Positions 54,243 through 61,755 of a DNA stretch of 64,000 nt are shown piece by piece (within the stretch, counting starts at the first letter, position 1; each line of letters starts with the position of its first letter). Source of the DNA: Adineta vaga (taxonomy: Eukaryota > Animalia > Rotifera); contig CP075494.1 in NCBI GenBank assembly GCA_021613535.1, forward strand, positions 13,206,001 to 13,270,000. Direction: 5' to 3'. The notes under the pieces are model-generated. The model saw nothing but the letters and a program-made list of their open reading frames with translations, was not told the DNA's origin and searched no databases. The translations under genes and the position numbers were made by a program.

Positions 54243-57200
54243 TTAAGAAGTGTTACGAAACACATTTGCAAGTTGTTCAGTACTTTTGGTGTCAAAAGAA
54301 TTATCATCCATTTTCTGAGTAAAATAGTCCAGCAGGATTTGGCAAAGTCGTGCATTTGTGAAAGACATTTTGATAGATTCTCCTGGCCGATATACTATGA
54401 TATTGCTTTCGTCAACAGAAAAACCATATTGGTGAATAATGAAAATCTTTTTGATGATGGGAAGCCAAAACAGAATTTCTGTATTAAAAAACGTCTCTAT
54501 CAATTGTTCTGGAGACCACTTCCTTAAAGATTCTGATTTCGGTTTCTCTGTGTATACCGATAATTTCCAGACCGTATGAGACTTCAGATTTGATAAACCT
54601 GTTGGAGAAGCTAGGAGAGTACTGATTGTTTCAGACACCGTAAATTCAACATCAGGGTCATCACAGTACACATCTAACAACGTATCAAGAACTTCATTAA
54701 TTGAAGGAACCGCATTCATACGACTCAGAATTTTGCAGACATTCAATTTTATATCCCTAATAGGATCTTTCAGTAACATGACGAGTGTAACAATTACTGC
54801 AGTCGTTGCCGCCTCAATATTAGCTTCTTTTAATACTCGACATGCATTCAACCTGATATGACCATTTGAGCTTTTTAATGCATTATTCAGTAAATCGATA
54901 ATTTCAGTCATTGCTGTTCGGTCCGTTTTGCGATTGACAACATAACGCACACTCCACTCAATACGCTCCTCTGTATCTTCTTGTGTACAAAGCGCTTTTT
55001 TGAATACTTCAGTGGTTATCCGGTCTTTGTCTATGGATCTCAGAGCTTTAATTGCTTCTCGACTGACGTCTGACGATCGGTCGTTGAGTAGAGCAAAAAA
55101 CGCAGCAACCACGTTAGGTGTTATAAACTGTTTATCTACGGATCGAAGAGCTTCAATTGCTTCACATCTGACGGTTGACGATGGATCACTGAGCCCAGCA
55201 ACGAATGCACCAACGATGTCACCTGTTATGAACTGTTTATCTATGGATCGAAGAGCTTTAATTGCTTCTCGTCTGACGTCTGACGATGGATCACTGAGCC
55301 CAGCAACGAATGCCGCAACAATGTCAGCTGTTATGAACTGTTTATCTATGGATCGAAGAGCTTCAATTGCTTCACATCTGACGGTTGACGATGGATCACT
55401 GAGCCCAGCAACGAATGCACCAACGATGTCACCTGTTATGAACTGTTTATCTATGGATCGAAGAGCTTTAATTGCTTCTCGTCTGACGTCTGACGATGGA
55501 TCACTGAGCCCAGCAACGAATGCCGCAACAATGTCAGCTGTTATGAACTGTTTATCTATGGATCGAAGAGCTTCAATTGCTTCACATCTGACGGTTGACG
55601 ATGGATCACTGAGCCCAGCAACGAATGCACCAACGATGTCACCTGTTATGAACTGTTTATCTATGAATAGAAGAGCATTAATTGCTTCACATCTGACGTC
55701 TGACGATGGATCACTGAGCCCAGCAACGAATGCACCAACAATATCAGCTGTTATGAACTGTTTATCTACGGATCGAAGAGCTTTAATTGCTTCTCGTCTG
55801 ACGTCTGACGATGGGTCGTTGAGTAGAGCAAAAAACGCAGCAACCACGTTAGGTGTTATGAACTGTTTATCTACGGATCGAAGAGCTTCAATTGCTTCAC
55901 ATCTGACGGTTGACGATGGATCACTGAGCCCAGCAACGAATGCAGCAACGATATCAGCTGTTATGAACTGTTTATCTATGAATAGAAGAGCATTAATTGC
56001 TTCACATCTGACGTCTGACGATGGATCACTGAGCCCAGCAACGAATGCACCAACAATATCAGCTGTTATGAACTGTTTATCTACGGATCGAAGAGCTTTA
56101 ATTGCTTCTCGTCTGACGTCTGACGATGGGTCGTTGAGTAGAGCAAAAAACGCAGCAACCACGTTAGGTGTTATGAACTGTTTATCTGCGGATCGAAGAG
56201 CTTCAATTGCTCCACATCTGACGGTTGACGATGGATCACTGAGCCCAGCAACGAATGCACCAACGATATCAGCTGTTATGAACTGTTCATCTATGGATCG
56301 AAGAGCTTTAATTGCTTCTCGTCTGGCGTCTGACGATGGATCACTGAGCCCAGCAACGAATGCACCAACGATATCAGCTGTTATGAACTGTTCATCTATG
56401 GATCGAAGAGCTTTAATTGCTTCTCGTCTGGCGTCTGACGATGGATCACTGAGCCCAGCAACGAATGCACCAACGATATCAGCTGTTATGAACTGTTCAT
56501 CTATGAATCGAAGAGCTTTAATTGCTTCTCGTCTGGCGTCTGACGATGGATCACTGAGCCCAGCAACGAATGCACCAACGATATCAGCTGTTATGAACTG
56601 TTCATCTATGGATCGAAGAGCTTTAATTGCTTCTCGTCTGGCGTCTGACGATGGATCACTGAGCCCAGCAACGAATGCACCAACGATATCAGCTGTTATG
56701 AACTGTTCATCTATGAATCGAAGAGCTTTAATTGCTTCTCGTCTGGCGTCTGACGATGGATCACTGAGCCCAGCAACGAATGCACCAACGATATCAGCTG
56801 TTATGAACTGTTCATCTATGGATCGAAGAGCTTTAATTGCTTCTCGTCTGACGTCTGACGATGGATCACTGAGCCCAGCAACGAATGCAGCAACGATGCC
56901 AGCTGTTATGAACTGTTTATCTATGGATCTAAGAGCTTTAATTGCTTCACATCTGACGGTTGACGATGGGTCGTTGAGTAGAGCTGAAAACGCGGCAACT
57001 ACGTCAGCGTTTATGAACTGTTGATCTATGGATCGAAGAGCTTCAATTGCTTTACACTTGACGTCTGCCGATGGATCTCGAAGTGCTTCGATCAGTCCAC
57101 TGATTACTACAGCAGTTATTGAGTGTTTGTCTATATCTATAAGAATAAGAGATACCCTGATTCTAACATCAGCATATGGAGCTTCTAAGAATTGATTCAA

Positions 57201-60200
57201 AATATCGATGGTTTCTTTTGTTAGTTGGGATTTTGATGCTTTTAGCAGAGTCTCGCATGCCATTTGTCTTATAAGGCTGTTTTTATGCTGCATTGGTACA
57301 CTTAGTACTTGAAATATTTTGTTGTCTGGTATTTTTGTGCTAATCTCTTGAAGGCTTGCACAGGCTTTTTCACAAATAAGTTCATCTAAACTTGCAAGTC
57401 CTCTCATTACTGCATTAATCACGACACTATTCACAGTTTTTCCGCATATTTGTGCAAGAGCCCTGTATGCACTTACTCTAACAGTAGCATTCTCATCCCC
57501 AAGCACATTAACAAGTTCATTGATTATTTCATCGGTCCTTGATTTCTGTCCCATTTTAGACACCGTCTCGCATGCAATATACTTCACAAAAGTTGTACCA
57601 TTTCTAAGTATGTTGGTCAGCTTACTAATTACTTCATCCTTCGCTGCTCTCTCTCTCAATTTTCCTATACTTTGACAGGCACTACAGACGACCATATCAT
57701 TCTTATCATCAAGTGCAGTTGTTAAATTATTGATCACGTCGCATGTTTCGACTTTCTCACCGATTTCGCCAAGAGCTCGACAAGCCGCACTTTGTACAAA
57801 AATATTTGTGTCTTTAACAGCAATTGCAAGACGAGAGATTATTTCTTCGGTTGCTGTTATTTGTCCCATAACACCGAGAGTGGAACACACAATACGTCGA
57901 ATCTCGTCGATTGGATCATCAAGTGCATGAAGAAGTTTGTTAACTACTTCGGCGTCTGACACGTTTTTAGCTAGCTTTTCGAGAGCTTGAAATGCGTTAG
58001 TTCTTATCAAATCATCTTTATGGTCCATGATAGATAGAACTGCATGTAGAAGTTCATTGGAAACAGTTGGAATATCCATCTGACTAAGTGCTTTACTGGC
58101 TCCGCGTTTTCTATCAAGATCTACATCATTAAGTAGATTAAGTAGCTTACGAACCACTTCATCGATGACTGTGTTCCGAATCAATATTCCAAAAAGCTTG
58201 CATGCGTCGTGACTGACCGTATCGTCAATACTTCCTATATATACTATCAATGCATTAATCATCGTATCAATACTCACTTTCTCACTTATGTTGAGAAGAG
58301 TTCGCAATGTATAGTGTCTTAAAATGAAAAGAGACTTCGCATCGGTCAACACAAACACTAGAGTGTCAATTAAATCATTAGTTATGAATTTTCCGTGGAT
58401 ATTTTCGAAAAATCCACATGCACCCTCTTTGACGGCCTCATTGCTGTTTTTCAATGCTCCTATTTGTGCGTTAATCAAGTCAAATGATGGATATGTAATT
58501 GGTAAACCAGATAATAAACGAGATGTCCTTTCCTTTATCATTGGATCTGACGATTCAATCAGTTTTGTGAATGCATCGAGCAAGTCGGATTGATTTACTA
58601 ATGACGGACTTCTTCTAAGTAAAGGTGCTAACGGATGTTCCGGATGATGATGTTCTTTGCGTATATAATAATCGATCCATTTTATTATCAACTTCACCGA
58701 TTCACGATACCAGGGAAAGCTACTAACACATTCAACCTCTTCAAAGCATGTGATAAGAAGTTGTGCATGTCTGTAACCGATAACATCCAATGGCTTTCCT
58801 AGTAACGTATCCCAAAACATTTTTGTCAATTGTTCATTGTTGCTATCTGTAACAAGGCCACATGCGAAATTGAGCACTAGTTCAAAACGTTGATTGTATT
58901 TGTGGTCTTTTATGAAATCTGTCGCTTTTTTCTGAGTGCATTCAGTACCACAGAGAGCTCTCAACAAGTATCGTGCTGCAAAATGTTCTTGAAAACTGAG
59001 ATGAACGAAGTAATGAGTTTTGTCTGTTTCGATGCGAGTTCCAATCGCTTTATAGTCCAAAGATTTTAATATTCCGATATTCAACGAACCCAATCCATCT
59101 TGTGAAGAGTAACCAGACTCTTTTATCGCAGCTCGTAGTACTTTTGGACGAATGACAATGTCACCACTCTGTATGCCAGAAAAGGCTAAACTCTCGAGGA
59201 ATACTAATTCTTTATTACAGAAATTACAAACATCTTCTTTTGTCATTTGACTTGAGCATTTATTTAGCTTTTCTAAATATCTTCGACACACCCATTCTGT
59301 CATCTTATCATACACAGCTGTCATTGTCAAACTTGTAGTTTCTGACCAATCAGTATCACACCAAAGACTACACATTAGTTCTAGAATTACTGGTATATGT
59401 GAAATACCCCACATTCGTGGATTTAGTTGCAAAAATCTCTGCAAATTTTCGACTTTCAACTGTGCATTATCTAATTGATCGTTGATTTGATTGAAAAATT
59501 GATTTGTATATTCCTTGATATTATTATCTGTGAAGCCGACAATTTCGAGTTGAGTATTATATGTTAGGTTGATTAAAAATGGTCGAGATGTCAAAACATG
59601 ATGTTGTTTTGTGCATATATGATCAAATACATCTTTCAGTTGCTCAGGAATATTTTGCACAAATTCATCATACCCATCTAAGATCCATAACACTTGTTCT
59701 TTGTCATAGTATTCTTTAAACTCGTCACGAAGTTTTTCTGATAATGGATCACACGGAAAGTACTCTCTTTCAACAAGATCGATTGGCAAGTAGCTGCGAT
59801 TCGAAGGATAACGATTTGATGTTAATGAACGTAATCGAATAAAAACAAGTAACTGATACTGTTGCCGAAGTTTACCAGTTGCCCATTGATAAGCAACATA
59901 TCGACAAAATGTAGTTTTTCCTATTCCAGCACGTCCAAGCACAAGTATCCTTTTCGTTTCTTCTGTACATCGTGCAAAAACGTCTTTGACCTCAATCGTA
60001 TTCTTCATACTATAGATTTCTTCAAAAATGTTAATTATTTCACCATTATATTTCATATCCAAGAGTTTCTTTTCTTTTTTCTGTTGTTCCTTTGTTTCCA
60101 CGATAGTCAAGTTGATATATGCGTCTCCGATTGGAAATGATTTGGACGGATTCATAATAAGTTCAATACGATTGTTTTGTAGATATTTTTGATTGAGTTG

Positions 60201-60237
60201 TAGACACAAACCACTTGATTCTGATTTCGGAACAATG
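54243..60237 (-). CDS. NACHT NTPase + HEAT-repeat NLR-like protein (single ~6-kb exon; probably exon 2 of an ART-NACHT-HEAT gene)
   Basis: Walker A GRAGIGKTT, Walker B ILDGYDE, sensor LTSRP, EIVGF, HIPVILEL, WHD YFVHLSFQEHFAA, then many HEAT units (L.D....VR..A..AL). No ATG at the ORF start; a polypyrimidine/TAG acceptor ends at 60238. Confidence 0.92.
54978..57077 (-). repeat. Coding tandem array: 20 x 105-bp (35-aa) near-identical HEAT repeats
   Basis: TCACTGAGCCCAGCAACGAA recurs at 105-bp spacing (e.g. 56341, 56446). Consensus DPSSDVRREAIKALRSIDKQFITADIVGAFVAGLS. Confidence 0.97.
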
Positions 60238-61093
60238 CTAAAGAATAGTAGAAATAACAGAAAAGAAAGTTTATTATAAAACAGCTACAGACTATCAATG
60301 TAACATCTGACAGACTGAAAAAACGTCCAAAACAAAGAATACATGAGTCTCACCTCTTTGGATAATGCCCATTTAGTCAAAATTTTCTGAAAAAAGGGCG
60401 ACTGTTTAAAAGTATGTATAGATTTTTGTTAGAATTCTTTTCAACATTATATTTCCTCATTTTATCTTTGGTTTTTACTCTCAATACGGAAACTGAACTA
60501 AATCTGTTCATCTGTCGAATACTGGATATCCATTCTGACTGTCATAATGCTCAAGTTGTACTTAAATCCGCAGTTTATTAACATTTGATTTTGATTCTGA
60601 AACGTAATTCATTGTTTTCTCTTTTGCATTAAAATAAAATAATAGAACAGAGCTTACGAACTTTGTGACAGTGAAATACCCATTTATTAGCTGATAAATT
60701 AATGATAGTTGAGAGCCTACTGGAAAAGCATTCTGATCACTCATGTAAGCTTCGCTTTAATCAACGGATTTTATTCCAGAAAAAACCTTCCTGGAAAAAT
60801 CGATCTACAACACAGATTCTCTATTCTCTTCTGAAACGTTACGAATTATATAGGTTGATTTCATATTCATGCAGCTGATCTCTTTTCTCTAAATTATCAG
60901 TTAAATCAATGAAATTTTCAACAGATTCTTTAGTTTTATGCTTACGTAGGACTATGATTGGTAGGCTATCGTAAAAATACTATCGAACAAAATATAATTG
61001 TTTGAAAAACTTTAAATTTAAAAACTCGAGTACTGTACACTTTACGACTGTCATTCTCTTGGCAAAATGTAGCGAAATCTGATATAGACTTAC

Positions 61094-61755
61094 CGTTGGA
61101 GATCTACTTCTTCCAAATAAAGAATGAAATGCAGATTATTGATGTCAAGAGTGTCGTATTTGCGACGGACACGAGTTCCAGGCATCAGAATAACCTCTTT
61201 CTCGTCAGGAACTGCTGAATATGTAGATATATCTTTTCCATGACATACATCAATTACGAATAGAGTGCCTTCATCGCCTAAAAATGGCTTAACACTACTA
61301 GGATTCATGGAACATGAAGTCAAACACCACCAAACCAGTTCATTATTTTCAACGAATTTCGAGGTACAATCATAATTCACTCCTCGCCAAACAGTAGCTT
61401 TAACGGACGGTAGTTTTTCCAAAGCACTTGTAAGTAGCCTTAAATAGGGCAGCCATGATTTTCGCTCATTTCGGTTACCAGTTCGAAGCGATTTATTAAG
61501 AGAAGAAGCTATCGGAGATGACATTGTGTAAAGATATATTGCCGCCGATTCATCTCGCGTTAGAAAATTTGAATTTTTATTGCAGTGCTCCATTGCAACA
61601 GAAACGTATTTAGTGAGATCAGGATCGGATGATTTTAGAAACAGCAATGCACCGTCCAAACCAAGAACTGGCTGATCTCGATAACTGTTGAATAGACCAA
61701 GGGTAACCTCTTGAGGTTCTAAGAAAATATTATTTATGAAACGATCGCGAGTCAT
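61094..61755 (-). CDS. R-S-E-clade (ARTC-type) mono-ADP-ribosyltransferase domain; probable first coding exon of the NACHT-HEAT gene
   Basis: LTRDESAAIYLYT, VWRG (R), TSCS (S), DEKEVIL (ExE). The ORF's stop lies inside a canonical donor CG|GTAAGT at 61094/61093. Confidence 0.88.

Follow-up and report, generated by a model that had tools for sequence, protein, structure and literature searches.

A young array of near-identical HEAT repeats in an NLR-like receptor gene of the bdelloid rotifer Adineta vaga, and its relation to the high-internal-conservation receptors of fungi

NLRs whose sensors are built of near-identical, reshuffled repeats have been recorded mainly from fungi and bacteria. 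The best described of these are the fungal NLRs with high internal conservation (HIC) of their repeats, which include HET-E, HET-D and the NWD family with its WD40 repeats, and the ANK, TPR and HEAT arrays of Podospora anserina (Dyrka et al. 2014, PMC4986451; Ament-Velasquez et al. 2025, PMC12222747). They are tripartite STAND proteins with a NACHT domain and C-terminal repeats of 24-42 aa, which are 80-100% identical within a gene and evolve in concert through unequal crossing-over and through exchange both inside and among paralogs, with diversifying selection acting on a few hypervariable codons of the binding face. The sole animal case named in the fungal literature is an LRR NLR of the sea urchin (PMC12222747), and our literature searches found nothing on NACHT-HEAT genes of bdelloids.

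The DNA analysed here, hereafter the window, is a stretch of 64,000 nucleotides from the assembly GCA_021613535.1 of Adineta vaga (contig CP075494.1, positions 13,206,001 to 13,270,000 of the forward strand); coordinates are counted from its first letter, and all the features discussed lie on its minus strand. It holds an NLR-like ART-NACHT-HEAT gene with an intact frame, the HEAT sensor of which contains 19 recently duplicated repeats. Exon 1 (61093..61755) codes for an N-terminal ADP-ribosyltransferase (ART) effector domain, recovered by Pfam (PF01129, 48.9 bits, cut-off 22.3) and by tblastn, in which residues 1-221 of P0001, the annotated protein of a paralog, align to it with 56% identity. 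The gap separating the two tblastn blocks of P0001 places a probable intron at 60234..61092; this placement is supported by the homologous break at 60238 in a spliced contig of the paralog, and in the RNA run X7 the depth, 8.3 up to 60213, is 1.15 beyond it. The same spliced RNA contig, with its loose end at 60238, was rejected as a splice product of the window gene, for its exon-1 end reads LHLEEVNPQ, as in the paralog, where the window gene has LYLEEVDLQ. Exon 2 (54243..60233) encodes the NACHT NTPase, the HEAT-repeat domain and a C-terminal tail in a single open frame, with the ORF at 54243-60209 amounting to 1988 aa and with Pfam matches to NACHT and to 15 HEAT_2 stretches. The NACHT domain (59490..59951; PF05729 at residues 70-223, 61.2 bits, cut-off 26.7) is placed identically by a genome-wide NACHT search and has the expected P-loop: the Walker A motif GRAGIGKTT and a Walker-B-like WILDGYDEF are both legible in the translation of the ORF. 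The NLRC4 helical domain HD2 gives a weak Pfam match in the protein, under its cut-off.

The effector, central NOD and repeats of a tripartite STAND protein are hence all present, the two exons having been searched separately and linked via P0001. We consider it probable, jointly with the overall explanation set out below, that the product is an NLR-like (STAND) receptor in which an ART effector precedes a NACHT NTPase switch and a C-terminal HEAT/ARM-like solenoid; the long solenoid of 35-aa units is most likely the putative ligand sensor. This build is shared with the fungal HIC NLRs, from which the rotifer gene differs in its animal host, in repeats that are 35-aa units of HEAT/ARM-like type, and in its ART effector. 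Sister genes carry a TIR effector in place of the ART. The combination of a NACHT or NB-ARC switch, an N-terminal effector and a C-terminal repeat sensor likewise recalls the LRR NLRs of animals and plants (NAIP/NLRC4, plant NB-LRR). Unlike these, the rotifer protein has a HEAT rather than an LRR sensor, an enzyme as effector rather than a CARD, PYD or coiled coil, and near-identical units, whereas the units of the LRR NLRs are anciently diverged.

The array itself occupies 55023..57017 and comprises 19 units of 105 bp (35 aa) with 12 distinct DNA sequences, as delimited by Tandem Repeats Finder (period 105 bp, 55026-57077, 19.5 copies, 88% matches), a register table and a difference matrix, the count and order of the units being those of one haploid assembly. 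At a period of 70 its self-identity reaches 100 of 100 aa, with 253 positions of the scan at 85% or above, and it thereby shows the identity of at least 85% across at least 100 aa by which Dyrka et al. 2014 defined HIC. A first-pass annotation, made from the letters of this DNA, had described 20 nearly identical units at 54978-57077. The array is indeed present in the assembly, but 54978-55022 lies outside it, and the unit at 57018-57122 is 30-41 nt from every array unit and is, by the difference matrix and the unit tree, the diverged ortholog of the first unit of the paralog. Near-identity, too, is a property of 15 units (types A, B, D and E), which are at most 12 of 105 nt apart with many pairs at 0-1, but not of the four PNVVAAFF-type units (0, 8, 11 and 18), which stand 14-31 nt from the remaining ones. 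The high divergence ascribed to the flanking HEAT repeats was confirmed by the register table. Upstream of the array they run over 57018..58380, the upstream limit being approximate (register table, pairwise differences, unit tree), and on its other side 54243..55022 holds C-terminal diverged units followed by a non-repeat tail (ORF reading, register table, comparison with the paralog).

The layout of the array is one of exact tandem duplications of two and three units, legible in the difference matrix. Units 2-6 (56283..56807), all of type A with V21A, form a doubled 210-bp block with one further unit, unit 2 being identical to 4 and unit 3 to both 5 and 6; units 7-12 (55653..56282) form two 315-bp blocks, B-C-D and B-C-D, in which units 8-9 exactly equal 11-12; and units 13-16 (55233..55652) form two identical 210-bp blocks, B-E and B-E. 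Individual units are moreover mosaic, as all four gametes occur at 83 of 300 site pairs in the four-gamete test, with an Rm of 4, that is, a minimum of four exchanges inside 105 bp. A close paralog, inverted and 90 kb away, has 9 diverged units against the 19 of the window gene, and its last two units group with the window types B and E in the unit tree. Unit-by-unit comparison of the DNA further revealed a tract of 446 nt (54614..55059), covering the distal end of the array, with zero differences from this paralog, even as the flanking DNA is 8-17% diverged. In the independent run X1 this tract is a single 446-bp unitig, the ends of which match it exactly, at about twice the single-copy depth; judged by its sequence, it is the trace of a recent ectopic gene conversion between the two genes.

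The few distinct units, the block duplications, the mosaic units and the paralog-identical tract therefore point to a young array generated by unequal exchange and gene conversion. As reconstructed from the unit sequences, about three ancestral units founded it, two of which survive as the last two units of the paralog; blocks of two and three units were then duplicated in tandem, through unequal exchange or replication slippage, and exchange within units and ectopic conversion with the paralog mixed the array further. Gain and loss of units, together with exchange within the gene and between paralogs, amount to the concerted evolution known from the fungal genes. The recombination-driven build-up originally suggested for the array is thus upheld by the exact multi-unit duplications, the minimum of exchanges and the conversion tract. 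The shuffling suggested along with it is not, as the order of units is that of tandem duplication blocks and not of free shuffling. Nor does any result speak to the putative asexuality of the animal that had been brought into play: unequal sister-chromatid exchange, slippage and ectopic conversion require no sex, and therefore the array says nothing on this matter.

Two other origins for such a structure have to be weighed at this point. Unit number, order or variant placement might be an artefact of assembly or polishing, stemming from mis-joined long reads or from short-read polishing that copied variants between units. Exact duplicates of 210-315 bp are prone to polishing mis-assignment, and mis-assembled alleles of similar fungal arrays have been documented (PMC12222747). 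The read-level evidence consists of Logan contigs from 24 runs, and these fragment and collapse inside the array, where they are short, none spans it, and the runs X6 and X7 leave 56273-56666 uncovered by any contig. Nevertheless, we regard an artefact as improbable: the 2-kb array is much shorter than usual long reads, the frame is maintained throughout, the unit variants occur as coherent multi-site haplotypes, and the word depths in X1 roughly fit the assembled units, with array bins at 1.8-11x single-copy depth, two of which (~5x and ~2x) agree, as a rough check, with the five type-A units and the two F31 units of the assembly. Programmed or frequent somatic rearrangement, yielding cell-specific receptors in the manner of the lamprey VLRs, has been the subject of speculation for comparable fungal arrays (PMC12222747). 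For the rotifer gene it is very improbable. Nothing direct favors it, the recent duplications implying only instability, and the assembly presents one coherent structure; the unit family has no member elsewhere in the genome besides the window gene and its paralog, and hence no library of donor cassettes, and no associated deaminase or recombinase was seen. Bdelloids also have a small, fixed number of somatic cells, which likewise counts against it. Length polymorphism between individuals is a hallmark of the fungal arrays, and the rotifer array is known from one haploid assembly; no ortholog from a second A. vaga isolate came up in a protein search, and an exact 27-nt pattern had no match among metagenome contigs.

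In an AlphaFold2 model with a mean pLDDT of 80, each unit has a helix A at positions 4-15, a helix B at 19-30 and an extra short turn at 34-36. Foldseek matched this model to the HEAT repeats of PP2A-A, to alphaRep (6fsq) and to designed armadillo proteins, while a sequence search of the PDB returned designed armadillo proteins, in first place, and PPR proteins instead of alphaRep. The alphaReps are stand-alone binders, designed from natural HEAT-like repeats with a C-cap from the protein MtH187 (PMC3754942), and not receptor domains. They share with the rotifer unit the two-helix repeat and the conserved D-x-x-x-x-V-R-x-x-A-x-x-A-L, but are 31 residues long, so that the rotifer unit, with 35 aa and its short extra turn, falls outside the 31-residue two-helix definition. 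In crystal complexes the target is bound by a concave face that carries the alphaRep variable positions 18, 19, 22, 23, 26 and 30 (PMC3754942). Aligned by the V-R anchor and the helix boundaries, these equate to array positions 19, 20, 23, 24, 27 and 31, in a one-to-one match between the six natural hypervariable positions of alphaRep (PMC3754942) and those of the rotifer family. Both this mapping and the motif D-P-S-S-[D/T]-[V/A]-R-[R/C]-[E/G]-A-I-[K/E/N]-A-L-[R/L]-[S/F], read at the outset from the units, proved correct. From helix periodicity and boundaries and the alphaRep analogy, we posit that the six positions occupy one face of helix B, the putative concave binding face.

Five of these six positions vary inside the window array. 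However, amino acids vary at 20 of the 35 unit positions, only five of which (20, 23, 24, 27 and 31) are alphaRep-equivalent, and the enrichment of entropy there has a permutation p of 0.06; the view that variation falls mostly at ligand-contact positions was accordingly overstated for this array. Contact-face diversity within it is low, with six combinations of contact residues among the 19 units. The unit types were already partly distinct before the amplification, because the states T20, C23 and E27 are already found in the paralog (unit P5; its last two units). When counted by a SLAC-like parsimony approach, short of a formal test, on trees of the 105-bp units, which recombine and thereby inflate the counts, the units of the window gene and paralog together have an omega of 2.06 at the face versus 0.52 elsewhere (Fisher p = 4e-4), with p = 0.06 for a face omega above 1 against neutrality. 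This count, made in the spirit of the dN/dS check that had been proposed, separates the face from the rest of the unit but stops short of significance against neutrality, and selection inside the window array itself (omega about 2, p = 0.06) is unproven.

Several of these observations are also those anticipated under a neutral or mildly harmful runaway expansion, in which an unstable repeat would display founder variation and a few random mutations unrelated to specificity: the overall pN/pS of the array is 0.6-0.9, the face states are shared with unit P5, face diversity is low relative to that of relatives, and none of the ten other A. vaga NACHT loci examined shows HIC, leaving the window gene as the only one among the examined NACHT genes of this species to pass 85% self-identity. 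We nevertheless deem such an expansion unlikely, as the frame is unbroken across the 19 units, the positions outside the face are constrained (omega about 0.5) and the gene is apparently expressed. Expression is indicated by the run X7, which the spliced contig of the paralog shows to be RNA: over three stretches (54614-55108, 56869-57314 and 57285-57941) in which the paralog stands 27-31 letters apart, the exon contigs of this run match the window gene with 0 or 1 difference.

The wider gene family also speaks against a neutral expansion. Among 121 scanned proteins (120 relatives and the window protein), 33 (27%) carry arrays with a self-identity of 85% or more over 100 aa; the named members are all from bdelloid rotifers, and the relatives from metagenomes are assumed to be so. 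Across 34 independent arrays, variability peaks at exactly 19, 20, 23, 24, 27 and 31: each of these six positions is polymorphic in 27-32 of the arrays, whereas the remaining ones average 11.4 (permutation p < 5e-6). In eight arrays available at the DNA level, counted by the same approach, the face omega is 1.71 (p = 0.006 versus neutrality) and that elsewhere 0.58 (Fisher p = 4e-14), with the face value exceeding 1 in all eight. By its sequences, then, there is a strong case at the family level that this bdelloid family evolves like the fungal immune receptors, with near-identical repeats that vary chiefly at six surface positions. The likeness extends to diversifying selection on a few hypervariable binding-face codons, which in the rotifers holds for the family as a whole and for a predicted face, and which is also seen at solvent-exposed repeat positions of LRR NLRs. 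The diversification of specificity in the manner of HET-E, as inferred by the first-pass annotation, thus finds its support in the family, whereas the window array, with its few combinations, its partly older contrasts and its non-significant selection, lends it little.

Hence, the explanation that we favor overall, and consider probable, is that of an NLR-like receptor with a young, recombination-grown array, belonging to a family with dN/dS above 1 at six face positions. Under this proposal, amplification and exchange of units would generate new combinations of contact residues, on which selection for ligand recognition might then act, a scheme already put forward for the HET-E/NWD receptors of fungi; the window array would represent an early stage, already amplified but still poor in contact-face diversity. 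Binding of a ligand would release oligomerisation of the NACHT domain and so activate the ART domain. A more far-reaching version of this proposal, which we advance tentatively and consider somewhat less likely than its alternatives taken together, is that the whole bdelloid ART/TIR-NACHT-HEAT family operates in the manner of HET-E: near-identical HEAT units might be in constant turnover, with amplification, exchange and conversion acting inside genes as well as from one paralog to another through mitotic-type recombination, and with diversifying selection on the six concave-face residues, such that arrays would differ among clones and new specificities against fungal and other parasites would arise fast without conventional sex. 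The window array might then be a fresh substrate, caught before its diversification.

Thus, as judged from the sequences of the family, the high-internal-conservation pattern of the fungal NLRs is present in an animal. The six hypervariable positions may serve as concrete candidate residues for work on ligand binding. If the family pattern holds, bdelloids would offer an animal system for the renewal of immune-type receptors by recombination without conventional sex, which would have a direct bearing on the Red Queen problem that these rotifers pose.

The window gene, on the minus strand, comprises an ADP-ribosyltransferase (ART) ORF (61093-61755; PF01129, 48.9 bits) upstream of an open frame of 1988 aa, exon 2 (54243-60209), in which Pfam recognizes a NACHT NTPase domain (residues 70-223) and 15 HEAT_2 stretches. 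The two exons were searched separately and linked through P0001, the annotated 1850-aa protein of an inverted paralog: as P0001 aligns to both ORF blocks with a gap at ~60234-61092, the window gene is predicted to be a two-exon ART-NACHT-HEAT gene. The best database matches to its protein bear Adineta vaga I4U23 locus tags. In the RNA run X7, contigs at 54614-55108, 56869-57314 and 57285-57941 match the window gene with at most 1 difference (paralog versions of the last differ by 27-31 letters), and lie on either side of the array, extending into it. Given these contigs and the drop in X7 depth in the intron, we take the window gene to be expressed, on contigs at both array borders and in the array's edges. 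The one spliced contig of X7 was rejected as its transcript, its exon-1 end being that of the paralog (LHLEEVNPQ; LYLEEVDLQ in the window). Separately, DNA contigs of the runs X1 and X6 depart from the reference at 60242, on the intron side of exon 2, into unrelated letters, which may be the paralog intron or the other haplotype. Run X18, labelled organism B, contains contigs that align without substitutions to the window gene over 54500-54896, 56933-57370 (with a single 1-nt gap) and 57760-57994, and a further contig at 59937-60106 with 12 different letters; despite its label, X18 probably comes from the same species.

In the array, Tandem Repeats Finder detects a period of 105 bp (55026-57077; 19.5 copies, 88% matches), corresponding in frame to 19 homologous 35-aa units at 55023-57017. 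The adjoining upstream unit (57018-57122) differs by 30-41 nt from every one of these and groups in the unit tree with the first unit of the paralog. Only 12 distinct DNA sequences occur among the 19 units, and these fall into five types: A (units 2-6), B (7, 10, 13, 15, 17), C (0, 8, 11, 18; distinguished by the helix A PNVVAAFFALLN), D (9, 12) and E (1, 14, 16). Unit 2 is identical in DNA to unit 4, as are units 3, 5 and 6 to one another; units 8-9 exactly match units 11-12 within two 315-bp B-C-D blocks, and units 13-14 exactly match units 15-16 as two 210-bp B-E blocks. The units are thus ordered in blocks, and a random shuffle does not fit. They are also mosaics: 83 of 300 informative site pairs fail the four-gamete test, indicating at least four exchanges inside 105 bp, and the type-C helix A occurs, for example, with a helix B resembling that of type E or B. 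The number of units and their arrangement come from a single haploid assembly, the public runs being seen as Logan contigs fragmented within the array. X1 depth over array bins is 1.8-11x single-copy, and two bins, at ~5x and ~2x, agree, as a rough check only, with the five type-A units and two F31 variants assembled.

The paralog (G000:C5:13355779-13360692) lies inverted 90 kb from the window gene and is 95% identical to it over the first 386 residues, NACHT included. It carries only 9 units of the array subfamily, 81% alike. Its final two units group with window types B (4-5 nt apart) and E/A (9 nt apart), and for its units P-1 to P4 the window gene has no equivalent; the array in the window gene is therefore a recent amplification from about three ancestral unit types. 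Beyond these two genes, no member of the unit family was found genome-wide (100.8 Mb, six contigs). Divergence between them is itself a mosaic along their length, with dS of 0-0.07 in the NACHT, 0.1-0.2 in the HEAT units ahead of the array and 0.5 in the C-terminal tail. A tract of 446 nt spanning the distal array border (54614-55059) shows 0 differences between the two genes, with flanks diverged by 8-17%. In the independent run X1 this tract is a single 446-bp unitig of depth 480, with nearby paralog-specific unitigs at ~240-255, which confirms that ectopic gene conversion took place recently, a clear-cut case for A. vaga. The ART exon (61093-61755 vs L013, exon 1 of the paralog) retains only 56% amino-acid identity, as against about 95-98% in the NACHT domains; either divergence or a swap has affected the effector end, or gene conversion has homogenized the NACHT-HEAT part.

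In an AlphaFold2 model covering 13 units (mean pLDDT 80), unit positions 4-15 form helix A and 19-30 form helix B, with a short turn at 34-36. Foldseek matches the model to the PP2A A subunit, alphaRep and designed armadillo proteins, and designed armadillo repeats come first in a PDB sequence search. In alphaRep libraries positions 18, 19, 22, 23, 26 and 30 are randomized, and in crystal complexes they make up the concave surface that binds the target (PMC3754942); with the V-R pair as anchor, these correspond to rotifer unit positions 19, 20, 23, 24, 27 and 31. All six are predicted to fall in one 140-degree helical-wheel arc, with the conserved V21, R22, A25, I26, A28, L29 and I32 in the opposite arc. 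By analogy with alphaRep, they would constitute the concave face.

The first-pass annotation had proposed recombination-driven diversification of receptor specificity, and it is at the level of the family that this proposal finds support. A protein search recovered 271 relatives at E < 1e-20; those named are all bdelloid (Adineta, Rotaria, Didymodactylos), with ART or TIR N-termini, and the remainder, from metagenomes, are presumed to be bdelloid. By the criterion of Dyrka et al. for highly conserved repeats, at least 85% self-identity over 100 aa (PMC4986451), 33 of 121 proteins (120 relatives and the window protein) scanned at periods of 35, 70 or 105 qualify. Period 70, two units, is commonest and dominates among the highly self-identical relatives, which suggests that the amplification unit is usually a HEAT repeat pair. 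Among 34 independent arrays, those polymorphic at positions 19, 20, 23, 24, 27 and 31 number 32, 32, 32, 28, 32 and 27, respectively, as against a mean of 11.4 over the other 29 positions; none of 200,000 permutations attained the observed value. In the pooled DNA of eight relatives, parsimony counts on short, recombining units give a face omega of 1.71 (p = 0.006 vs neutrality), or 2.3 against pooled dS, and a non-face omega of 0.58 (face vs rest, Fisher p = 4e-14); each of the eight arrays taken singly has a face omega above 1. This family-level pattern is our strongest result. A. vaga itself has a small family, with about 13 NACHT matches genome-wide, while many named relatives are from A. 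steineri. The window gene alone reaches 85% self-identity in A. vaga, as against ten other NACHT loci examined. Its sister genes L014, L015 and L017 begin with TIR-like sequence in place of ART.

For the window array, the proposal holds only for how the array was built. That it varies mostly at contact positions, as also suggested, was overstated: 20 of 35 positions vary, of which five belong to the face (20 D/T, 23 R/C, 24 E/G, 27 K/E/N, 31 S/F; position 19 is constant), with an entropy enrichment of p = 0.06. In units 1-17 all variant codons of helix B are amino-acid-changing, while six synonymous variants lie in helix A; pN/pS is 0.6-0.9 overall. A dN/dS comparison, by the same parsimony counting on the tree of window and paralog units, yields a face omega of 2.06 (S 4.5, N 35.5) that falls short of departing from neutrality (p = 0.06), and 0.52 elsewhere (face vs rest, Fisher p = 4e-4). 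Only six face-residue combinations occur among the 19 units, and the type-B states T20, C23 and E27 are already present in the paralog unit P5; hence, part of the face variation was inherited and is not new. The link earlier drawn to asexuality adds nothing, because the processes involved are intrachromosomal and signatures of gene conversion and recombination have been reported before in A. vaga.

The fungal NLRs of high internal conservation have repeats 80-100% identical, which undergo concerted evolution via unequal crossing-over and exchange within and between paralogs, and diversifying selection acts on a small number of codons of the binding face (PMC4986451; PMC12222747). The rotifer pattern matches theirs, as regards face-codon selection at the level of the family. 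HEAT arrays of this kind have been listed in fungi, the sole animal case being a sea-urchin LRR NLR (PMC12222747), and we found no description of a bdelloid NACHT-HEAT family in the literature searched.
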